A DNA stretch of 25,945 nt from Octopus sinensis. Its lineage: Eukaryota. The notes under the pieces were generated by a model that saw only the letters and a program-made list of their open reading frames with translations, searched no databases and was not told the DNA's origin. Below are positions 1,141 through 25,945 of the stretch, in pieces. The DNA lies in contig NW_021836009.1 in the NCBI RefSeq assembly GCF_006345805.1, positions 1 through 25,945 on the forward strand. Direction: 5' to 3'. The position numbers and the translations under genes were made by a program. The first letter of the stretch is position 1, and the number at the start of each line of letters is the position of its first letter.

Positions 1141-1272
1141 GGAAGTGTGGAAGTCAGCTCGTGACCGAGTAAGATCGCTTCTGAAAACACACAAAGTGCG
1201 TGCAAACGTTTACAAGAGTCTTAGAAGCACAAGTACATGCACATACAAACACACTCATACACACACACACAC

Positions 1273-2080
1273 TTAAGAACTCATGTCTCTGGTTTAAAGC
1301 ATTTTTTTCCTGGAACAGAATGAAGAACTTTTCTGAGAGGCAAAGATTACATTTCATAGGTCTTTTATAAGCTCCACGTCTGCATGCTGATGCTTTTTCT
1401 AGAATTTTCCAGGTTACATTGAAATGATGGGTGTCATTCTCTTTCAATTCCCAGAAATGCATTGCAAGACAAGTTGCTGTCCTGTTCTCGGGGTATCGGA
1501 AAGAATTTCGGTGGAAATAGAATGGAGTCTTGAATGAATTTCCCGAAGCCCCTGTGTATGTTTTATATTCTTCTGAGCCATCTACTTGGACTCTATAAAC
1601 AATTCCTTTTTCAAAACATTTGCCTTCCAACGGACAGGAAGTCTGATCATTTAAGTTGCAGTAACTCAGATTAGATTCGGCACTGTAGTTGTCTGTAATA
1701 AGTTTCGTGTTCTGCTGGCTAATACAAGAGGCGAAGTTTTTGCAACAAAAATAGATGACCTTCAGTGTTTTCCTATTAAATATTCTATAGAACTTATGAC
1801 TAGACTGAAAATACTTAGAAACTAATTTTAAGGATTCCCTACCTATTTTAGTTTTTACGGCAATATCAAATGCGGGGTTAAACCACAAAACTTTCCTAGT
1901 TCTTGTTCTGTGTGGTCTATTATTGCTAGAATTAACTTGAGTATATTGGATCTTCTCCGCGAATCCACTTTTCCTAAATACTATATTGTAATAAGGTGCA
2001 GCATTTTGAAATGCCGTCTCATCTGAATAAATTGATGATATTCGCCTTCCTTCATTACTAACTACGTTCGAAATAAGGGA
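1273..2080 (-). mobile_element. Penelope-like element (PLE) 3' fragment: RT thumb/linker plus GIY-YIG endonuclease, degenerate
   Basis: The minus frame is open from 2080 to 1154. It reads GRRISSIYSDETAFQNAAPYY..KSGF..RKVLWFNPAF..KTKIG..IFNRKTLK..CN..CPLEGKC..GIVY..YTG..FK..H..SFR..W.I..KCNLCLSEK..LNQR. This matches the typical PLE pattern WFNPPF / IFNRNTVKVSYSC / CNC..CPL.G.C / YIG / CNLCL.EK / LNKR. It is truncated by (TA)n at the 5' side and (TG)n at the 3' side. Confidence 0.9.
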
Positions 2081-4430: not shown

Positions 4431-4734
4431 AGCGGCGAGCTGGCAGAAACGTTAGCACGCCGGGCGAAATGCGTAGTCGTATTTCGTCTGCCGCTACGTT
4501 CTGAGTTCAAATTCCGCCGAGGTTGACTTTGCCTTTCATCCTTTCGGGGTCGATAAATTAAGTACCAGTTACACACTGGGGTCGATATAATCGACTTAAT
4601 CCGTATGTCTCTCCTTGTTTGTCCTCTCTGTGTTTAGTCCCTTGTGGGTAGTAAAGAAATAGGTATTTCGTCTGCCGCTACGTTTTGACTTCAAACTGCC
4701 ATTCATCCTTTCGGGGTCGATTAAATAAGTACCA
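4431..4734 (+). mobile_element. Family B SINE: head, one ~184-bp unit with tail i, and a partial second unit
   Basis: A-box TGGCAGAAACGTTAG, B-box GAGTTCAAATTCC, tail ..GTGGGTAGTAAAGAAATA, then GGTATTTCGTC (4662-4672) restarts the unit. The second unit has a GCC-microhomology deletion and stops at AAGTACCA. Confidence 0.92.
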
Positions 4735-6338
4735 CTTCATTAGTTGCTACTGTGCTGCTTTGCAGCAATTTTGTTTGTGCTTCTCATAGAGGAAGGTCGA
4801 CTTAGTGAAAAAGATGTCTGAAGAAAACTTCAGCTATTCAGATATGTCATCTTCAGAGGAAGAAGCTTTTGAAAACGGTCAAGAGAATGGACGAAAAATT
4901 AAATGGAGAAAAGAGAAACTTTGTGGACGTGACAAAGTGCCAGGGAAATGATATTAATATTGTAATATTTGAAAATTACAAACGTTTATTAAGTCTCGAT
5001 GGATGTGACGTTAAATTGCCCCCCACCCCCACCCCGCAAGATACCTTTAATAATATCAAAGAAAGAACAAATTTGTACAAGACGTTTTCAATAATTGAAG
5101 GAAGGATTGACGTCGTGACCACGGATCAGGTGGAGAAGGCGTTGGGACCGATATGGCATGAAATTGAGTACCTTGCGAGAGGTGCTAAGTTCGGAGTAGT
5201 GGAGGTAAGATTCAAGGACGCGGCAACAGCAAAAAAACACGCAGCGACTACCATTAAGAGTAAAGAAGTTGTGCTTTTGCCCACTTACCGTGGACAACGT
5301 GCGACCAGAGTTAAGGGAGGGAATTCCGCCAGAGATAGATGTGGCCTGGATAGCAGCCGCTGTCCTTCTGGGGAGTGAGGACAACATAGCGGTTCTCCAG
5401 GCTACAAAAATGCTATGTGCTATATGGAAGGGACAGATACTGGACATGGTTTTTCAAGATTGAACCGAAACCCTAGAAAACATTACAGAAACAATAATTA
5501 TGGACGACGCGATAATGAGGATCAGGGTGGAGGGTAGAATCCTTCGATGCTTTAAATGTGGCCTGAAGGGCCACATTAGAGTGGACTGCCCTTCACTGAC
5601 CAGAAAGACGGAGGAGATATAAGAGAAAGATCCCCTCATCCCCCCACAAAAGAGCAAGAAAATAAGAAAGAATACAAACTATCAACAGAAGTAGAGAAGA
5701 TAGAAATAGACAATGAATGGGAAACAATAGGAAAATGGAACAAGAGAAAAAGAAAAAATTAAGCCTTATAACCATCCAACACCCAACCACACCCTCTTCA
5801 ACCCACCCTCCCCCTACAGACACCAAACCTGTCCATCCCTCTCTGACACATAAAATGTACAAACAGACAAGAACTTCCAGACTCTACCCAACTGTCAGAC
5901 TCTACCCAACACCCAGACTCTACCCAAGTAATGTATGATGACTCAAATGAAACACTGTGTAAAGAAGTGTTATCTTGGGAAGACTTTAAAACAGTTGGAA
6001 CGAGTTTTGACAACATAAAGGGATGGCACTGTTGCGCGTTGTACTCAGATGAACACAAAGAAAAAAATAACAAGATTTAAAAGCGGATATGGGAGTTGGG
6101 AGGTGAAATTGGTGGGAGAATCCGGAATCGATATTCTAGCGGGAACGAAGTTTAAAAGGTTTAAATGAAACTGCTATGAAGTGGGGCAGAATGGCTTCAT
6201 TCCATTTTTCATTTTACTTTTCATGTCATTTTTTTTTTCATACATTGGTTCTAATTTTTGTTCCCTCTGTTTGTATGTCCCCGCATATTGTGGATTGTCC
6301 TTTATATGTTCGCCCCGTAGTGGGTAATATAGAAGATT
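4735..6338 (+). mobile_element. ORF1-only L1/Tx1-like non-LTR element (HAL1-like), decayed
   Basis: ATG at 4814 (MSEENFSYSDMSSSEEE). Frameshifted ORF1-like peptide ..EVRFKDA..LLPTYRGQRATRVK/GIPPEID.. and ..IRVEGRILRCFKCGLKGHIRVDCP (CX2CX4HX4C at 5548-5589). In-frame TGA at 5461. The coding-like tail decays by ~6170, followed by a T-rich 3' UTR. No endonuclease or RT motifs. Clade assignment is by motif recall. Confidence 0.7.
5870..5930 (+). repeat. Three 18-bp tandem units containing CAGACTCTACCCAA (PDSTQ-type peptide repeat) in the ORF1 C-terminal region
   Basis: CCAGACTCTACCCAACTG TCAGACTCTACCCAACAC CCAGACTCTACCCAAGTA. Confidence 0.9.
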
Positions 6339-7555: not shown

Positions 7556-8515
7556 TTAATTGCTTCTTTAAAGTTTTCTCTATTGATTTTCTATAAAAAA
7601 TTATGGCACTGCTAACACAGTAGACTTACAAAAACATTCAATATACTTTGTAGTATATTATAGTGGCATAATGAAATACGGTGTCCTTACAGGTCATTAA
7701 TACTTCATTGCTGCAACTCAATTTCGAGCAATGCTAATATCTGATTGTTCTCTTAAACATGAATAGCACAGATGTCGCTTTTCAGTCCTACGAAGAAGCT
7801 ATACTCCTTTGCATAGATGTGATAACTATGGGTGCATGTTGCAGTATATGTTTAGAGAGCTTACCACCCATGCCGGTGCATGCTTTTTAACGTTGGGAAT
7901 GACCTTCCACGGAGCCTAATCCCACTCTATAAACAACGCGTGTATTTTGCTCCAAAAACAACTTGTCTATAGGACTGGATATAAATTAATTCACAGGCGT
8001 TACAACAGTGTCTTCGTTCTTCTAATGTGATATCTAAACAAAGACTAGAAGTCTCTCACTTCCAGCTATTGGCCGGCTGTTTATTCTACTGAGTTAATCT
8101 GCCCTTCGACATGTTCTGTTTTCTGTCCTGCAGGCTGTCCAAGGAAAATTACCTTTGTTACTATTAGTTTTATTAGATGCGAAGGACCAACCATGTAACA
8201 GATTTTACTCGTTTAGCTGTTACTCAGAGTTACCATACATGCATAAATACGCACAACTATTTCACTGTTTCCTCTTACTATTACGATCTGATACCTTTCT
8301 ATCAGAAGCTCTTTCACTAAAGAAGGCATTCTATACATAGCTTGAACAGTCAGCCAAATTGCTGGGAGTGAGATACATGGGCCAAGAGACAGCAACGAAA
8401 TGAACAGCGTCATTGGTGAACTCAGCTAAAAGCAGCCCTTAATTGGATCTTAAGCCGAGCACTGTCGTTGATGAACTTTGTTAAAAGCAAACAAGTGCTA
8501 ACAGTAAATAAGACC

Positions 8516-9096
8516 TATTTCTTTACTACCCACAAGGGGCTAAACACAGAGGGGACAAACAAGGACAGACAAACGGATTAAGTCGATTACATCGACCCCA
8601 GTGCGTAACTGGTACTTAGTTTATCGACCCCGAAAGGATGAAAGGCAAAGTCGACCTCGGCGGAATTTGAACTCAGAACGTAACGGCAGACGAAATACCT
8701 ATTTCTTTATTACCCACAGGGGACTAAACACAGAGGGGACAAACAAGGAAGACAAACGGATTAAGTCGATTACATCGACCCCAGTGCATGACTGGTACTT
8801 ATTTTATCGACCCCGAAAGGATGAAAGGCAAAGTCGACCTCGGCGGAATTTGAACTCAGAACGTAACGGCAGACGAAATACCTATTTCTTTACTACCCAC
8901 AAGGGGCTAAACACAGAGGGAACAAACAAGGACAGACAAACGGATTAAGTCGATTACATCGACCCAAGTGCGTAGCTGGTACTTAGTTTATCGACCCCAA
9001 AACGATGAAAGGAAAAGTCGACCTCGGCGGAATTTGAACTCAGAACGTAACGGCAGGCGAAATAGCGCTACGCATTTCGCCCGGCGAGCTTGCGTT
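8516..9096 (-). mobile_element. Family B SINE array: 5'-truncated head plus three ~184-bp tandem units, with 11-bp TSD
   Basis: CTATTTC recurs at 8515, 8699 and 8882 (periods 184 and 183). TAAATAAGACC is present at both 8505-8515 and 9097-9107. Confidence 0.95.
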
Positions 9097-9476
9097 TAAA
9101 TAAGACCGACGCATTGATATCAATCGCGTGCATTTCACTATTCTGGTGTAGCAGGTACAAAAGCCATGAGCAGGGTAACTTCCTCCGGACAAAAATAATT
9201 TATACGTAGCAGTAATGTATTAAGGTTAGTTCATTCAAATCTAATCTTCTCTTGACTGTACTTCGTGCCATTGATTAAATTTTCCATCAAAATACGCTCA
9301 TTATTTTGAAAGTCCATTGAACTTCTCAAGTGTTTGTGGTGGTATATTACGTAAAAATAAATTTCAAAAATATTTTACAATTTACCATCCTAAGTGGAAT
9401 TTTCAATCAAAGTAGACAGACGTAATTTAAAAGTGAAAATATTACTGAACAAACACGAATTTATTAGATAATACAC

Positions 9477-10417: not shown

Positions 10418-10907
10418 AATACTTTGGGTGCATAATGTAGGGACGTGTTTGGGAAAACGCTTTAATTCATTTGTGAATATAAATAATAAAGAGAAGACAC
10501 ATGCATAGTTTTGCTCGCAACTCATAAAACAGAAAATGTTTATTTAATATCATTTGCCACACATAACGCATATGAAATATCGTGTTCTTTAAAAGAATTT
10601 TTGGTAAACTTAATGAACCAAGAAAAATCTAAAGAAAATAATTTTAAAAACAGAGAATAAAACTGACTTTTCAAAAGGAAATTGCATTGGCTTTTGTCAA
10701 GTTAATTAAAATAGATTACCTGCCGCAAATTATAATGAGGATCTTTAACACCTGCCGAAAGAAAAATCACACAAAATTGCATTTATTTCGGAAAAACAAC
10801 AAATGATAATAGTGTTTACTTTCTATGAGTTAATGCTATAAAAATGTATATAAATTCACGAATACAAACGACAGTTAATAAAGCCATTTATTATTGTTTA
10901 CATATGC

Positions 10908-11320
10908 GTTTCAAATTTTGGCACAAGGCCAGCAGTTTCGATGGAGGGGGGTAAGGCGATTATGTTAACTCCATTGCACAACCTAGTACGTATTTTATCG
11001 ATACACAAAGGGATAAAAGGCAAAGTCTACCTCGGCGGAATTTGAACTCAGAACTAAAAGATGGACGAAATGCCCCTATGCTTTTCATCAAGTAAGCTAA
11101 CGATTCTTTTCTACTCTAGGCACAAGGTCCGGAAATTCCGGGGGTGGGAGCCAGTCGATTAGATCAACCCCAATACGCGACTAGTACTTAATTTATCGAT
11201 CCTGAAAGAATAACGGCTAAAGTCGACCTCGGCGGAATTTGAACTCAGACCGTTAAGACGGACGAAATACTACTCAGCATTTCGTCCGGCGTGCTAACGT
11301 TTCTGCCAGCTTGATGCCTT
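10908..11320 (-). mobile_element. Family B head-to-tail dimer (tail iii copy joined to the A-box of a tail ii copy)
   Basis: In sense: full copy 11320-11102 ending CCTTGTGCCTAGAGTAGAAA, then AGAATCGTTAGC.. through ..CCTTGTGCCAAAATTTGAAAC. Confidence 0.85.
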
Positions 11321-16401: not shown

Positions 16402-16846
16402 TCAGAACGTAAAGACAGACGAAATACCTATTTCTTTTACTAACCACAAGGGTCTAAATACAGAGAGGACAAACAAGGATAGACAAACGGATTAGGTCGA
16501 TTATATCGACCCCAGTGCGTAACTGGTACTTAATTTTATCGACCCCGAAAGGATGAAAAGCAAAGAGGATCACGGCGGAATTTGAACTCAGAACGTAACG
16601 GCAGACGAAATACCTATTTCTTTATTACCCACAAGGGGTTAAACACAGAGGGGACAAACAAGGACAGACAAACGGATTAAGTCCATTATATCGACCCCAG
16701 TGCGTAACTGGTACTTAATATTATCGACCCCGATAGGATGAAAGGCAAAGTGGACCACGGCGGAATTTGAACTCAGAACGTAACGGCAGACGAAATACCG
16801 ATAAGCGTTTCGCCTGGCATGCAAACAATTCTACAAGCTCACCGCC
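16402..16846 (-). mobile_element. Family B array: diverged head, two tail-i units (185-186 bp) and a 26-bp older-type stub
   Basis: GACGAAATACC at 16418-16428, 16604-16614 and 16789-16799. The stub has GTAAAGACAGAC (older variant) versus GTAACGGCAGAC in the units. Confidence 0.92.
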
Positions 16847-17116: not shown

Positions 17117-17386
17117 CCCTTCTACTATAGGTTCAAGACCTTAATTTATCGACCCCGAAATGATGAAAGGCAAAGTTGACCTCGGCGGAATTTGAACACA
17201 GACTGTAAAGCTGGGCGAATGATAATAATAATTAGTATATCAAATTTTTGCCCCAAGGGCAGCTTTGGGGAGATGGAGATGAGATGATTACATCGATCCC
17301 CAGTTTTTAATTTATCGACCCCGAAAGGATAAAAGGCAAAGGTGACCTCGGCGGAAATTGAACTCAGAACGTAAAGCCGGGCGAAA
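17058..17386 (-). mobile_element. Family B dimer, both units starting at TTCGCCC, ending in tail iii plus (ATT)n
   Basis: Two ATCGACCCCGAAA..GGCAAAG..CTCGGCGGAA..GGGCGAA blocks (~17145-17220 and ~17310-17386); (AAT)n at 17058-17116. Confidence 0.85.
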
Positions 17387-23266: not shown

Positions 23267-23670
23267 GGTGCAGAACTAGCTGAATCGTTAGCACGCCGGG
23301 CGAAAGGCTTTGCGGTATTTCGTCTGCCGCTACGTTCTGAGTTCAAATTCCGCCGAGGCCGACTTAGCCTTTCATCCCTTCGGGGTCGATTAAATAAGTA
23401 CCAGTTACGCACTGGCCTCGATATAATCGATTTAATCCGTTTGTCTGTCCTTGTTTGTCCTCTCTGTGTTTAGCCCCTTGTGAGTAGTAAAGAAATAGGT
23501 ATTTCGTCCGTCTTTGCCTCCTGAGTTCAAATCCTGCAGAGGTTGACTTCACTTTTTATCCTTTCGGTGGTTGATAAAATAAGTACCAGTTGAGCACTGG
23601 CGTCGATGTAATTGACTTCATCTCTCTCACGAAATTACTGGCCTTGTATCAGAATTTAAAACCGTTATTA
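23267..23670 (+). mobile_element. Family B: head, one young 184-bp tail-i unit, and the remainder of an older tail-ii copy
   Basis: GGTATTTCGTC at 23314-23324 and 23498-23508. The downstream unit is more diverged and ends GGCCTTGTATCAGAATTTAAAACC. Confidence 0.9.
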
Positions 23671-23748
23671 ATTATTAAATTATAACAAGTAACAATGGCA
23701 GGAACAACAGCTACAGCTAGAACGCGATCAAAATCAGCAACAGCAGCG

Positions 23749-25114: not shown

Positions 25115-25333
25115 GATTTCAAATTTTGGCACACAGTGACTGCGATTTCGAAGTGGAGGGGGATAAGTTGATTACATCAATCCCAGCGCTTGAATGATAT
25201 TTATTTTATCGACCTCGAAAGGATGAAAGGCAAGGTCGACTCCCGTTGGAATTTGAACACAGAACCTAGCGACAGATGGAATGCTGCTAATTATCTTGTC
25301 CGGCATGCTAGCGTTTCTGCCAGCTCGCTGCCT
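25115..25333 (-). mobile_element. Family B SINE, full length, diverged, tail ii
   Basis: TTTCAAATTTTGGCAC..ATCGACCTCGAAAGGATGAAAGGCAAGGTCGAC..GCGTTTCTGCCAGCTCGCTGCC. Confidence 0.85.
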
Positions 25334-25335
25334 TG

Positions 25336-25383
<48 letters not shown>

Positions 25384-25906
25384 TGCTTCATACTACTAAC
25401 ACTGATTATGAGGAAAGCAAAAGCTAAGTATGTATTCAAAAGTCTCCAACAAAAAGTCAACCAGCTGTTATTTATGGATGACCTCAAACTTTATGGTAAG
25501 GATGAATCGCAAGTCCGTTCCCTCGTTTATACGGTGTATACTTTCAGTGCTGATATCAGAATGGAGTTCGGACTGAGAAAGTGTGATGTGTTAGTCTTGA
25601 AGAGAGGCAAAATCAAATACCGTCATGAGAGGTTTTAAAGCAGATAGAAGAGACGACCTATAAGTACTTGGGGATTTTGGAAATGGAAAATTGATGAAGA
25701 AAGAAATGACAGAAAAATTTAAGGTGCAGTAATTGCGCAGACTGAGGCTGATCCTTAAGTCGAAATTAAATGGATGGAATAAGATCGAAGCTATCAACAC
25801 TTGGGTGGTTTCACTCCTTAGATATGGAGCAATGGTAATCGCATGAACAGTAGACGAACTAAACAGCTTAGACAGAAAGACAAGGAAGGTGCTAACTAGA
25901 TATGGG
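25384..25906 (+). pseudogene. Reverse transcriptase fragment of an R4/Dong-like non-LTR retrotransposon
   Basis: LRK-like IMRKAKAKY, NQLLFMDDLKLYGK (FMDD at 25471-25482), FSADIRMEFGLRKC. After frameshifts: YKYLGILE, RRLRLILKSKLNGWNKIEAINTW and LDRKTRKVLTRYG. Contains stops and frameshifts. Confidence 0.85.
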
Positions 25907-25945
25907 TCATAATAATAATGATGATGATGATGAGGAGGAGGATGA

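Follow-up and report, generated by a model that had tools for sequence, protein, structure and literature searches.

Head-to-tail chains of a tRNA-type SINE joined at a hairpin apex in Octopus sinensis DNA

Positions 8505-9107 of a 25,945-nucleotide stretch of Octopus sinensis DNA (contig NW_021836009.1; hereafter the window) hold a short tandem array of a tRNA-type short interspersed element (SINE) that we refer to as B. We compared this focal array with three further B chains in the window, with copies of other SINE families and with two sequences from outside the window, a 76 kb O. bimaculoides chromosome sequence (L001) and a 543-bp contig (L002), both reached via protein matches of a spurious open reading frame (ORF) that spans a junction. 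The window is microsatellite-rich DNA, all of the analysis was done on about 102 kb of octopus sequence in total, and the statistical tests have four loci as their basis. The parts of the focal array and of its target site duplication (TSD) are, from 5' to 3':

9097-9107, minus strand: 5' copy of the TSD, GGTCTTATTTA, an exact 11/11 direct repeat with 8505-8515
9067-9096, minus strand: 5'-truncated head, element positions ~17-46 by alignment to full-length copies, beginning AACGCAAGC...
8883-9066, minus strand: unit 1 (positions 47-229, 184 nt), from GCTATTTCGCC to ..GTGGGTAGTAAAGAAATA; 11 differences from consensus, 8 of them private
8700-8882, minus strand: unit 2 (183 nt), its GGTATTTCGTC start abutting the tail of unit 1; another sub-lineage (A128, tail GTAATAAAG); 7 differences from consensus
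8516-8699, minus strand: unit 3 (184 nt), with a GGTATTTCGTC start and a tail that abuts the 3' TSD copy; least diverged, with 3 differences and 0 private
8505-8515, minus strand: 3' copy of the TSD, GGTCTTATTTA, an exact repeat of 9097-9107

The array proper (8516-9096, minus strand) thus consists of a 5'-truncated head and three units of 184, 183 and 184 nt, for which Tandem Repeats Finder reports a period of 183, 3.0 copies and 94 % matches. The head has lost its first ~16 nt, including most of an A-box-like region, and retains the 5' arm and the loop of a hairpin described below. An 11-bp TSD had been noted around the array in a preliminary description of this DNA, and it is indeed exact: all 11 of 11 bp match with zero offset at both element ends (chance about 4^-11 for a fixed pair). 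There is one TSD, and the first unit alone is 5'-truncated. One perfect TSD around a truncated head and three units is the signature of a single retro-insertion. Only in the focal array are all units enclosed by one TSD pair; a clear TSD is absent from the three other chains.

B is a tRNA-type SINE of 229 nt whose 5' start, (AA)GGCGGCGAGCTGGCAGAA.., was derived from full-length copies elsewhere. Its tandem units run from position 47 onward and measure 183-186 nt, so that the arrays of exactly 184 bp claimed earlier are real as tandem arrays but not as exact multiples of that length. A B-box-like GAGTTCAAATTCC and an A-box-like TGGCAGAATCG can be recognised by eye in the SINE head; ARAGORN found no tRNA in it, and Rfam gave no tRNA match to it at E<=1. 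The central region of the SINE (..TTTCATCCTTTCGGGGTCGATAAATTAAGTACC..) may be CORE-like. The octopus tRNA-derived SINEs OR1, OR2 and OK were reportedly described by Ohshima and Okada in 1994. OR2 has been listed as a CORE-SINE (PMC4758252).

Seven B tails are present in the window, all with the pattern GTGGGTA[AG]TAAAGAAATA. Six of the seven, at 4662, 8699, 8882, 16428, 16614 and 23498, run directly into GGTATTTCGTC, exactly where the preliminary description had placed its tail-to-GGTATTTCGTC junctions, and the seventh runs into unique DNA. All six downstream units begin at element position 47, and the tails of the internal units are all complete (..GTGGGTA[AG]TAAAGAAATA). It had been proposed that GGTATTTCGTC is an internal site of the same SINE. 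It is head sequence of B, but it is also the ordinary head sequence of several other SINE families here and is not specific to the junctions. Heads preceded by a B tail account for 6 of 12 in the window versus none of about 11 in L001. In the genome from which the window comes, the junction thus goes with B tails.

Two B monomers lie outside the window, one in L001 and one in L002, and their tails continue with GAAATAAATAA and GAAATAAATATA, respectively, before unique flanks. GAAATA, regarded earlier as the true 3' end, is therefore not universal. The L001 monomer has its own 11-bp TSD, TATAAGGCCTA, and the flanks of both monomers are unrelated. A B-like 3' region (..GTTCGCCCCGTAGTGGGTAATATAGAAGATT) is also found at window positions 6250-6338 on the plus strand, with no SINE head or core upstream of it and a C-type SINE starting at head position 15 directly after it. 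We found no long interspersed element (LINE) coding or reverse transcriptase (RT) remnants upstream of this tail, which could belong to a truncated partner LINE, as its 3' end, or be a decayed SINE.

The SINE head is predicted to form a 13-bp hairpin, GGGCGAAAUGCU[UAGC]GGUAUUUCGUCU, at -17.2 kcal/mol (z = -3.5). The 3' arm of this hairpin begins, right after the loop, with position 47, which is the first G of GGTATTTCGTC; every B junction therefore lies at the hairpin apex. The hairpin is conserved: in 17 copies taken from the window and O. bimaculoides, paired cells amount to 89 % versus 38-55 % when the pairing is slid, and three compensatory double changes were found, a number reached in 2 of 500 shuffles. 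In other copies, deletions are concentrated in the hairpin region. In all full-length SINE copies of the window and L001, the CpG-rich heads (positions 1-46) diverge from consensus about 3.3 times as much as the bodies do, which any comparison of ages has to take into account. At L001 69670-69700 the loop of one SINE head hairpin contains telomere-like (TTAGGG)n repeats (GTGCTTAG|GGTTAGGGTTAGGGTTAGG..|GTGCTTAGCAACATTTC).

The remaining B chains of the window, together with copies of other families used for comparison, are as follows:

4431-4745, plus strand: second chain; full-length B as far as 4661 and, from the junction at 4662, part of a B of another sub-lineage with an internal deletion and 3' truncation
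16402-16846, minus strand: third chain; a full-length B (16846-16615), B unit 2 (16614-16429) and a 27-nt A-type head stub (16428-16402)
23271-23680, plus strand: fourth chain; full-length B ending at 23497, followed from 23498 by positions 47-end of a C-type SINE that has an (ATT)n-like tail of its own
10905-11318, minus strand: comparison chain of other families; the junction at 11103/11102 connects a full-length SINE with an A tail to one with a C tail, the latter starting at head position ~19
17138-17386, minus strand: two non-B SINE copies with 5' ends at the hairpin apex (model positions 52-53), one after a (CTT)n microsatellite and the other after an (ATT)n tail

No TSD is detectable for the second chain, and the sole candidate for the fourth is a weak 6-bp AACAAG. 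Six SINE units of three tail families follow one another on the minus strand from 17386 to 16402, each abutting the preceding tail or a microsatellite, and the third chain is the 3'-most part of this series. Units 1 and 2 of the third chain have in common variants that are found in no other copy, which fits either local duplication or one RNA copied twice. Divergence in this chain is 9/45 for the head versus 7/184 for the body, and the downstream unit has 13 differences from consensus versus 7 upstream.

Simple tandem duplication fails in three of the four arrays, where neighbours belong to different sub-lineages or families (focal, 4662 and 23498). In the focal array, units 1 and 3 share C128, G157 and C195, and unit 2 belongs to another sub-lineage. 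B is followed by a C-type element at 23498, by an A-type stub at 16428 and by a different B sub-lineage at 4662, and because of these heterologous neighbours we conclude that the junction has formed repeatedly. The comparison of markers between terminal and internal units, suggested in the preliminary description, thus speaks against simple tandem duplication for most arrays, and the junction is highly non-random. The earlier view of the downstream units at 16402 and 23498 as an older subfamily variant needs revision: these units do differ from the B upstream, but the one after 23498 belongs to another SINE family and ends in an (ATT)n-type tail of its own, and the one after 16428 is the 27-nt stub of an A-type head.

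The units of the focal array are unequally diverged. Differences from an independent consensus number 11 in unit 1, 7 in unit 2 and 3 in unit 3, of which 8, about 4 and 0, respectively, are private (unit 1 vs unit 3, P=0.008). The head differs from the independent consensus at 5 of 30 positions. When corrected for the 3.3-fold rate of heads, a head belonging with unit 1 is expected to show 6.0 differences and one belonging with unit 3 only 1.6; the fit to unit 3 is poor (P=0.026), with a likelihood ratio of about 8. An uncorrected test of the head against unit 3 (P=0.0002-0.0025) was set aside as too optimistic, since heads diverge faster than bodies. The focal head fits unit 1 better than unit 3, on statistics that are modest.

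The fourth chain is a B-to-C chimera (23271-23680) with the 5' arm GGGCG, which is found with GTCTG 3' arms in 10 of 10 two-armed copies, and its downstream unit has a GTCCG arm, elsewhere paired with GGAC heads. As weak evidence, these arms speak against the head and the last unit being the two parts of one old element. None of the three full-length first units (4431, 16846 and 23271) has an orphan head fragment upstream. Given the absence of orphan heads and the B-type arm of the chimera, insertion of B into its own kind would therefore need a homologous joining that is seamless and yet supplies a head of the new type each time.

Junctions are also found in other families, at other positions. 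Two of seven A tails (..GTAGAAAAGAAT) are directly followed by head position 19, at window position 11103 and at O. bimaculoides L001 69653, and the end of the A tail, AGAAT, is identical to head positions 14-18, a 5-nt overlap. An (ATT)n tail is joined at head position ~52. Non-B copies that start at model positions 49-53 with no B tail before them occur at window 17386, window 17219 and L001 75469; such apex starts make up 3 of 21 truncated starts inside a 7-nt window (P=0.06). Across families it is thus the tail sequence with which the junction position varies, and the hairpin apex is a hotspot of 5' ends even where B tails are absent. Both observations point to annealing and to an RT stop or switch rather than to the specificity of an endonuclease.

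Three further arrangements were noted in L001. At 75298-75566, SINE positions 1-112 are followed by 59 nt of unrelated sequence and then by a second SINE from position 49, at the apex. At 37218-37621 there are three tandem SINE-like units of an older family, in which a unit runs to about position 133 and the next one begins at head positions 3-9; this SINE-derived array has a different phase. An apparent duplication at ~40785-40800 was rejected: the same SINE segment is present on both sides of an N run there, and the likeness to a junction is an artefact of this assembly gap.

We tentatively favour the reading, plausible though still short of probable, that the chains are head-to-tail concatemers of an octopus tRNA-type SINE that arose during retrotransposition, the junction being the end of the cDNA of the downstream copy. 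The RT would copy one SINE RNA from its tail to the hairpin apex and then switch, or jump, to the 3' end of a second SINE RNA. Alternatively, it may copy a multi-unit read-through transcript of RNA polymerase III (Pol III) that already holds the junction, in which case chains could be propagated as multimer RNA. The chain would in either case integrate as a single insertion with one TSD and ordinary 5' truncation, and single integration would account for the one TSD, the 5' truncation and the head that matches unit 1 in the focal array. Multiple template jumps by a LINE RT (PMC2104539) and serial jumping by the R2 RT (PMC8857657) are documented, and template switching is the usual explanation of module exchange and mosaics among SINEs (PMC4758252).

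The position of the junction would be set by annealing of the 3' end of the acceptor RNA to the nascent cDNA. The A-tail junctions can be explained by annealing of AGAAT, which is directly visible. For B tails, annealing would need read-through bases on the RNA, either GG or GGUAUUU up to a weak TATTT terminator; TATTT is known as a weak Pol III terminator of SINEs (PMC8466645). Such an extension of the B RNA would pair with a cDNA ending at position 47 and also with the primer at a target that starts GGT, and would thereby account for the GGT at the start of the sole unique-DNA target. This target is identical to the head site at 5 of 7 positions, with C|GGT in common (chance P=0.013, n=1); the resemblance described earlier as GGTnTT comes down to this one partial match. 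The consensus B unit has no T4 run, nor do 5 of 7 scanned units of the window, and Pol III read-through is possible as a result; the T4 runs that do exist, two in unit 1 of the focal array and one in the unit at 16614, all arose through private changes. Once formed, the repeated sequence from position 47 onward would allow local unequal recombination to add units. Two other pairings were considered and rejected, namely microhomology of the B tail (GAAAT) with the 5' arm of the head, which would put the junction at position 40, and re-use of the original target with TATTT pairing, which would give GAAATAGGTCTTATTTCG; neither is seen.

Several observations weigh against such an origin of the chains during reverse transcription. 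Six of the seven B tails are junctions and the window contains no plain B monomer, a frequency that is high for a sporadic RT jump and that needs a multimer RNA or a strong effect of homology. The B tail has no visible microhomology unless the RNA has an unobserved 3' extension. Downstream units are 3'-truncated in two chains (4662 and 16428); target-primed reverse transcription (TPRT) makes no such ends, and later deletions would be needed. The gradient of 11 > 7 > 3 differences is a coincidence if the array was made in one shot and is expected if units were added serially on the 3' side. Finally, four loci carry all of the tests, and the corrected head test reaches only P=0.026.

An alternative close to what the preliminary description proposed is that B targets its own kind: the endonuclease of a partner LINE, or homology between a 3'-extended B RNA and a nicked head, would place B into C|GGTATTTCGTC of resident SINE heads, and homologous 5' joining would hide the seam. 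In all six cases the 3' junction falls precisely at the end of the tail, as it does in ordinary TPRT, six of the seven B tails abut the site, downstream units may belong to other families and the sole unique target has C|GGT and 5 of the 7 positions of the head site (P=0.013). There is precedent in target-specific Tx1 LINEs and in SINEU-3, which inserts into Mariner-N4_AMi, a setting in which a co-transcribed target can reinforce specificity (PMC4494074), and O. vulgaris has active LINEs of the L1-Tx1 and Dong-R4 groups (PMC13282606). The head of the third chain is also more diverged than its body (9/45 vs 7/184), but the ~3.3-fold divergence of heads is general, so that this excess is not diagnostic. 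What weakens the proposal of a self-targeting endonuclease with homologous 5' joining is that the last focal unit, supposedly the old resident, is the youngest-looking (3 differences vs 7 and 11), and that the head fits unit 1 and mismatches unit 3 (P=0.026, likelihood ratio about 8). GGGCG, the 5' arm of the B-to-C chimera, is of B type, while GTCCG 3' arms accompany GGAC heads, and orphan heads are found upstream of 0 of 3 full-length first units. Moreover, the junction position changes with the tail type in other families, and apex 5' ends arise without any B tail. We therefore regard self-targeting as unlikely. The same low probability applies to its more general form, in which a SINE subfamily would home to the hairpin apex of SINE heads, its own family included, and build arrays via repeated self-insertion, guided by a sequence- or structure-preferring partner endonuclease or by read-through GGUAUUU pairing with a nicked head. 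We know of no self-targeting SINE that has been described; if true, it would represent a new kind of target specificity for non-autonomous retroelements.

The order of divergence in the focal array is better predicted by serial growth on the 3' side, where the resident tail, or the boundary between tail and TSD, is nicked again and an apex-truncated new copy is joined to the tail end, so that upstream units are older. It predicts 11 > 7 > 3, a head continuous with unit 1, a single enclosing TSD and the T4 runs of unit 1 as late mutations. The nick may be helped by the perfect pairing of the bottom strand of the resident tail with the incoming B RNA tail. Joining of LINE cDNAs at their 5' ends by microhomology ('annealing') is established (PMC4760211) and fits the AGAAT junctions, and insertion into older SINE tails is a recognised path to B2 and Dip multimers (PMC8466645). 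We nevertheless consider serial growth rather improbable: the likeness of the unique target to the head site is left unexplained, the B junction at position 47 has no microhomology, a heterologous incoming C-type RNA cannot pair with a B tail, the downstream unit of the third chain is the more diverged one (13 vs 7) and the top-strand break must hit the exact tail end every time. An origin at the DNA level appears to us less probable still. The stretch between position 47 and the tail would here be duplicated in place by unequal crossing-over, replication slippage or breakage at the palindromic head hairpin, a mechanism that has been put forward for SINE-derived satellites. Such an origin would agree with the variants shared by the two units of the third chain and absent from all other copies, with the deletion hotspot at the hairpin in other copies and with the second SINE-like tandem array in a different phase at L001 37218-37621, and unequal recombination has been offered for arrays in squamates (PMC10702118) and bivalves (PMC11481361). 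It cannot, however, yield the junctions between families or sub-lineages (23498, 16428, 4662 and units 1, 2 and 3 of the focal array), the unequal private differences (8, ~4, 0; P=0.008) misfit copies that were identical at birth, and the same breakpoints at four loci would require a special cause.

The chains can be compared with multimeric SINEs in other animals. In the blood clam Scapharca broughtonii, TSD1-(SINE)n-TSD1 arrays likewise have one TSD pair, a first unit with a tRNA-related head and later units cut at a fixed head position; the internal clam units, however, also have an incomplete 3' tail, and unequal recombination is suggested as the origin of these arrays (PMC11481361). The internal tails in octopus are complete, the units restart at a hairpin apex and neighbours may be different families. 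Squamate SINE-derived satellites (sSats) also repeat a portion of a SINE in tandem with a longer terminal unit that extends to the SINE terminus; they originated repeatedly and independently, and insertion at the same locus has been named as a possible route (PMC10702118). They differ in having hundreds of homogenised units near telomeres, whereas the octopus chains have 2-3 units and are interspersed, one of them with a clean TSD.

Head-to-tail units are common among B2, Dip and Ves multimers and Alu-type dimers, where they make up 11-49 % of copies, and their origin by tail insertion or by retroposition of multimeric templates has been left open (PMC8466645). These multimers consist of full-length units that meet at A-rich tails, whereas the downstream unit in octopus starts within the head, at position 47 (19 for A tails). 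A further comparison is with the chimeras made by LINE RT template jumps, namely the tripartite elements of Magnaporthe (PMC2104539) and the products of R2 RT (PMC8857657), in which serial RNAs are likewise joined in one TPRT event, upstream parts end at the RNA 3' end and there is one TSD. The switch there usually takes place at the 5' end of the donor RNA, unlike the octopus switch, which would take place at an internal apex or a processed 5' end and at a far higher frequency. Tx1-clade LINEs and SINEU-3 illustrate that a SINE can inherit the preference of its partner LINE for a sequence inside another repeat, the precedent for self-targeting (PMC4494074). The target is visibly split in these cases and the partner LINE shares it; a split target was sought in octopus and none was seen.

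The observations are most simply described as orderly rather than exceptional SINE multimer formation, a new example with an unusually precise junction at a hairpin apex. If chains do form in reverse transcription at a defined hairpin, this would show concretely how interspersed repeats can become tandem ones and how mosaic SINE families can arise, steps that are usually only inferred, and the fixed junction position makes the mechanism testable. SINEs account for over a tenth of octopus genomes, with 11.6 % in O. vulgaris, whose repeat annotation makes no mention of such SINE arrays (PMC13282606). SINE-related matches number about 22 in the 26-kb window and about 27 in the 76 kb of O. bimaculoides, with many diverged copies, as for a short non-coding dispersed repeat.

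Searches for further copies were extended to other collections. The junction pattern had zero matches in viral contigs. The tail pattern matched 45 loci in metagenome and prokaryotic genome contigs, all of them chance 19-20-mers without SINE homology. A search starting from an RT fragment in the window (25333-25945, see below) matched only ENA holobiont contigs, which came from other organisms and did not contain the SINE.

Other features of the window lie outside the chains. The RT fragment at 25333-25945 (plus strand) is degraded and frameshifted (RVT_1, E=1.7e-4) and adjoins a C-type SINE at 25162-25332 (minus strand); it is the only RT fragment in the window and is unrelated to the B tail. 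A 244-amino-acid ORF at 1154-1888 (minus strand) contains a GIY-YIG-like motif (GIVYRV..YTGASG). It has no Pfam match even at E<=10 and has two homologues with 40-43 % identity on short ENA/Logan contigs, and it may be a transposable-element protein. Near-perfect foldback palindromes are located at 2265-2423 and 2734-2859, one with 69-nt arms that are 99 % complementary around a 21-nt spacer, the other with 60-nt arms at 95 % around a 6-nt spacer. Both gave microRNA-like Rfam matches below threshold; microRNA-like matches were set aside, being far under the gathering scores and in low-complexity or palindromic DNA. The two palindromes may be foldback elements or elements resembling miniature inverted-repeat transposable elements.

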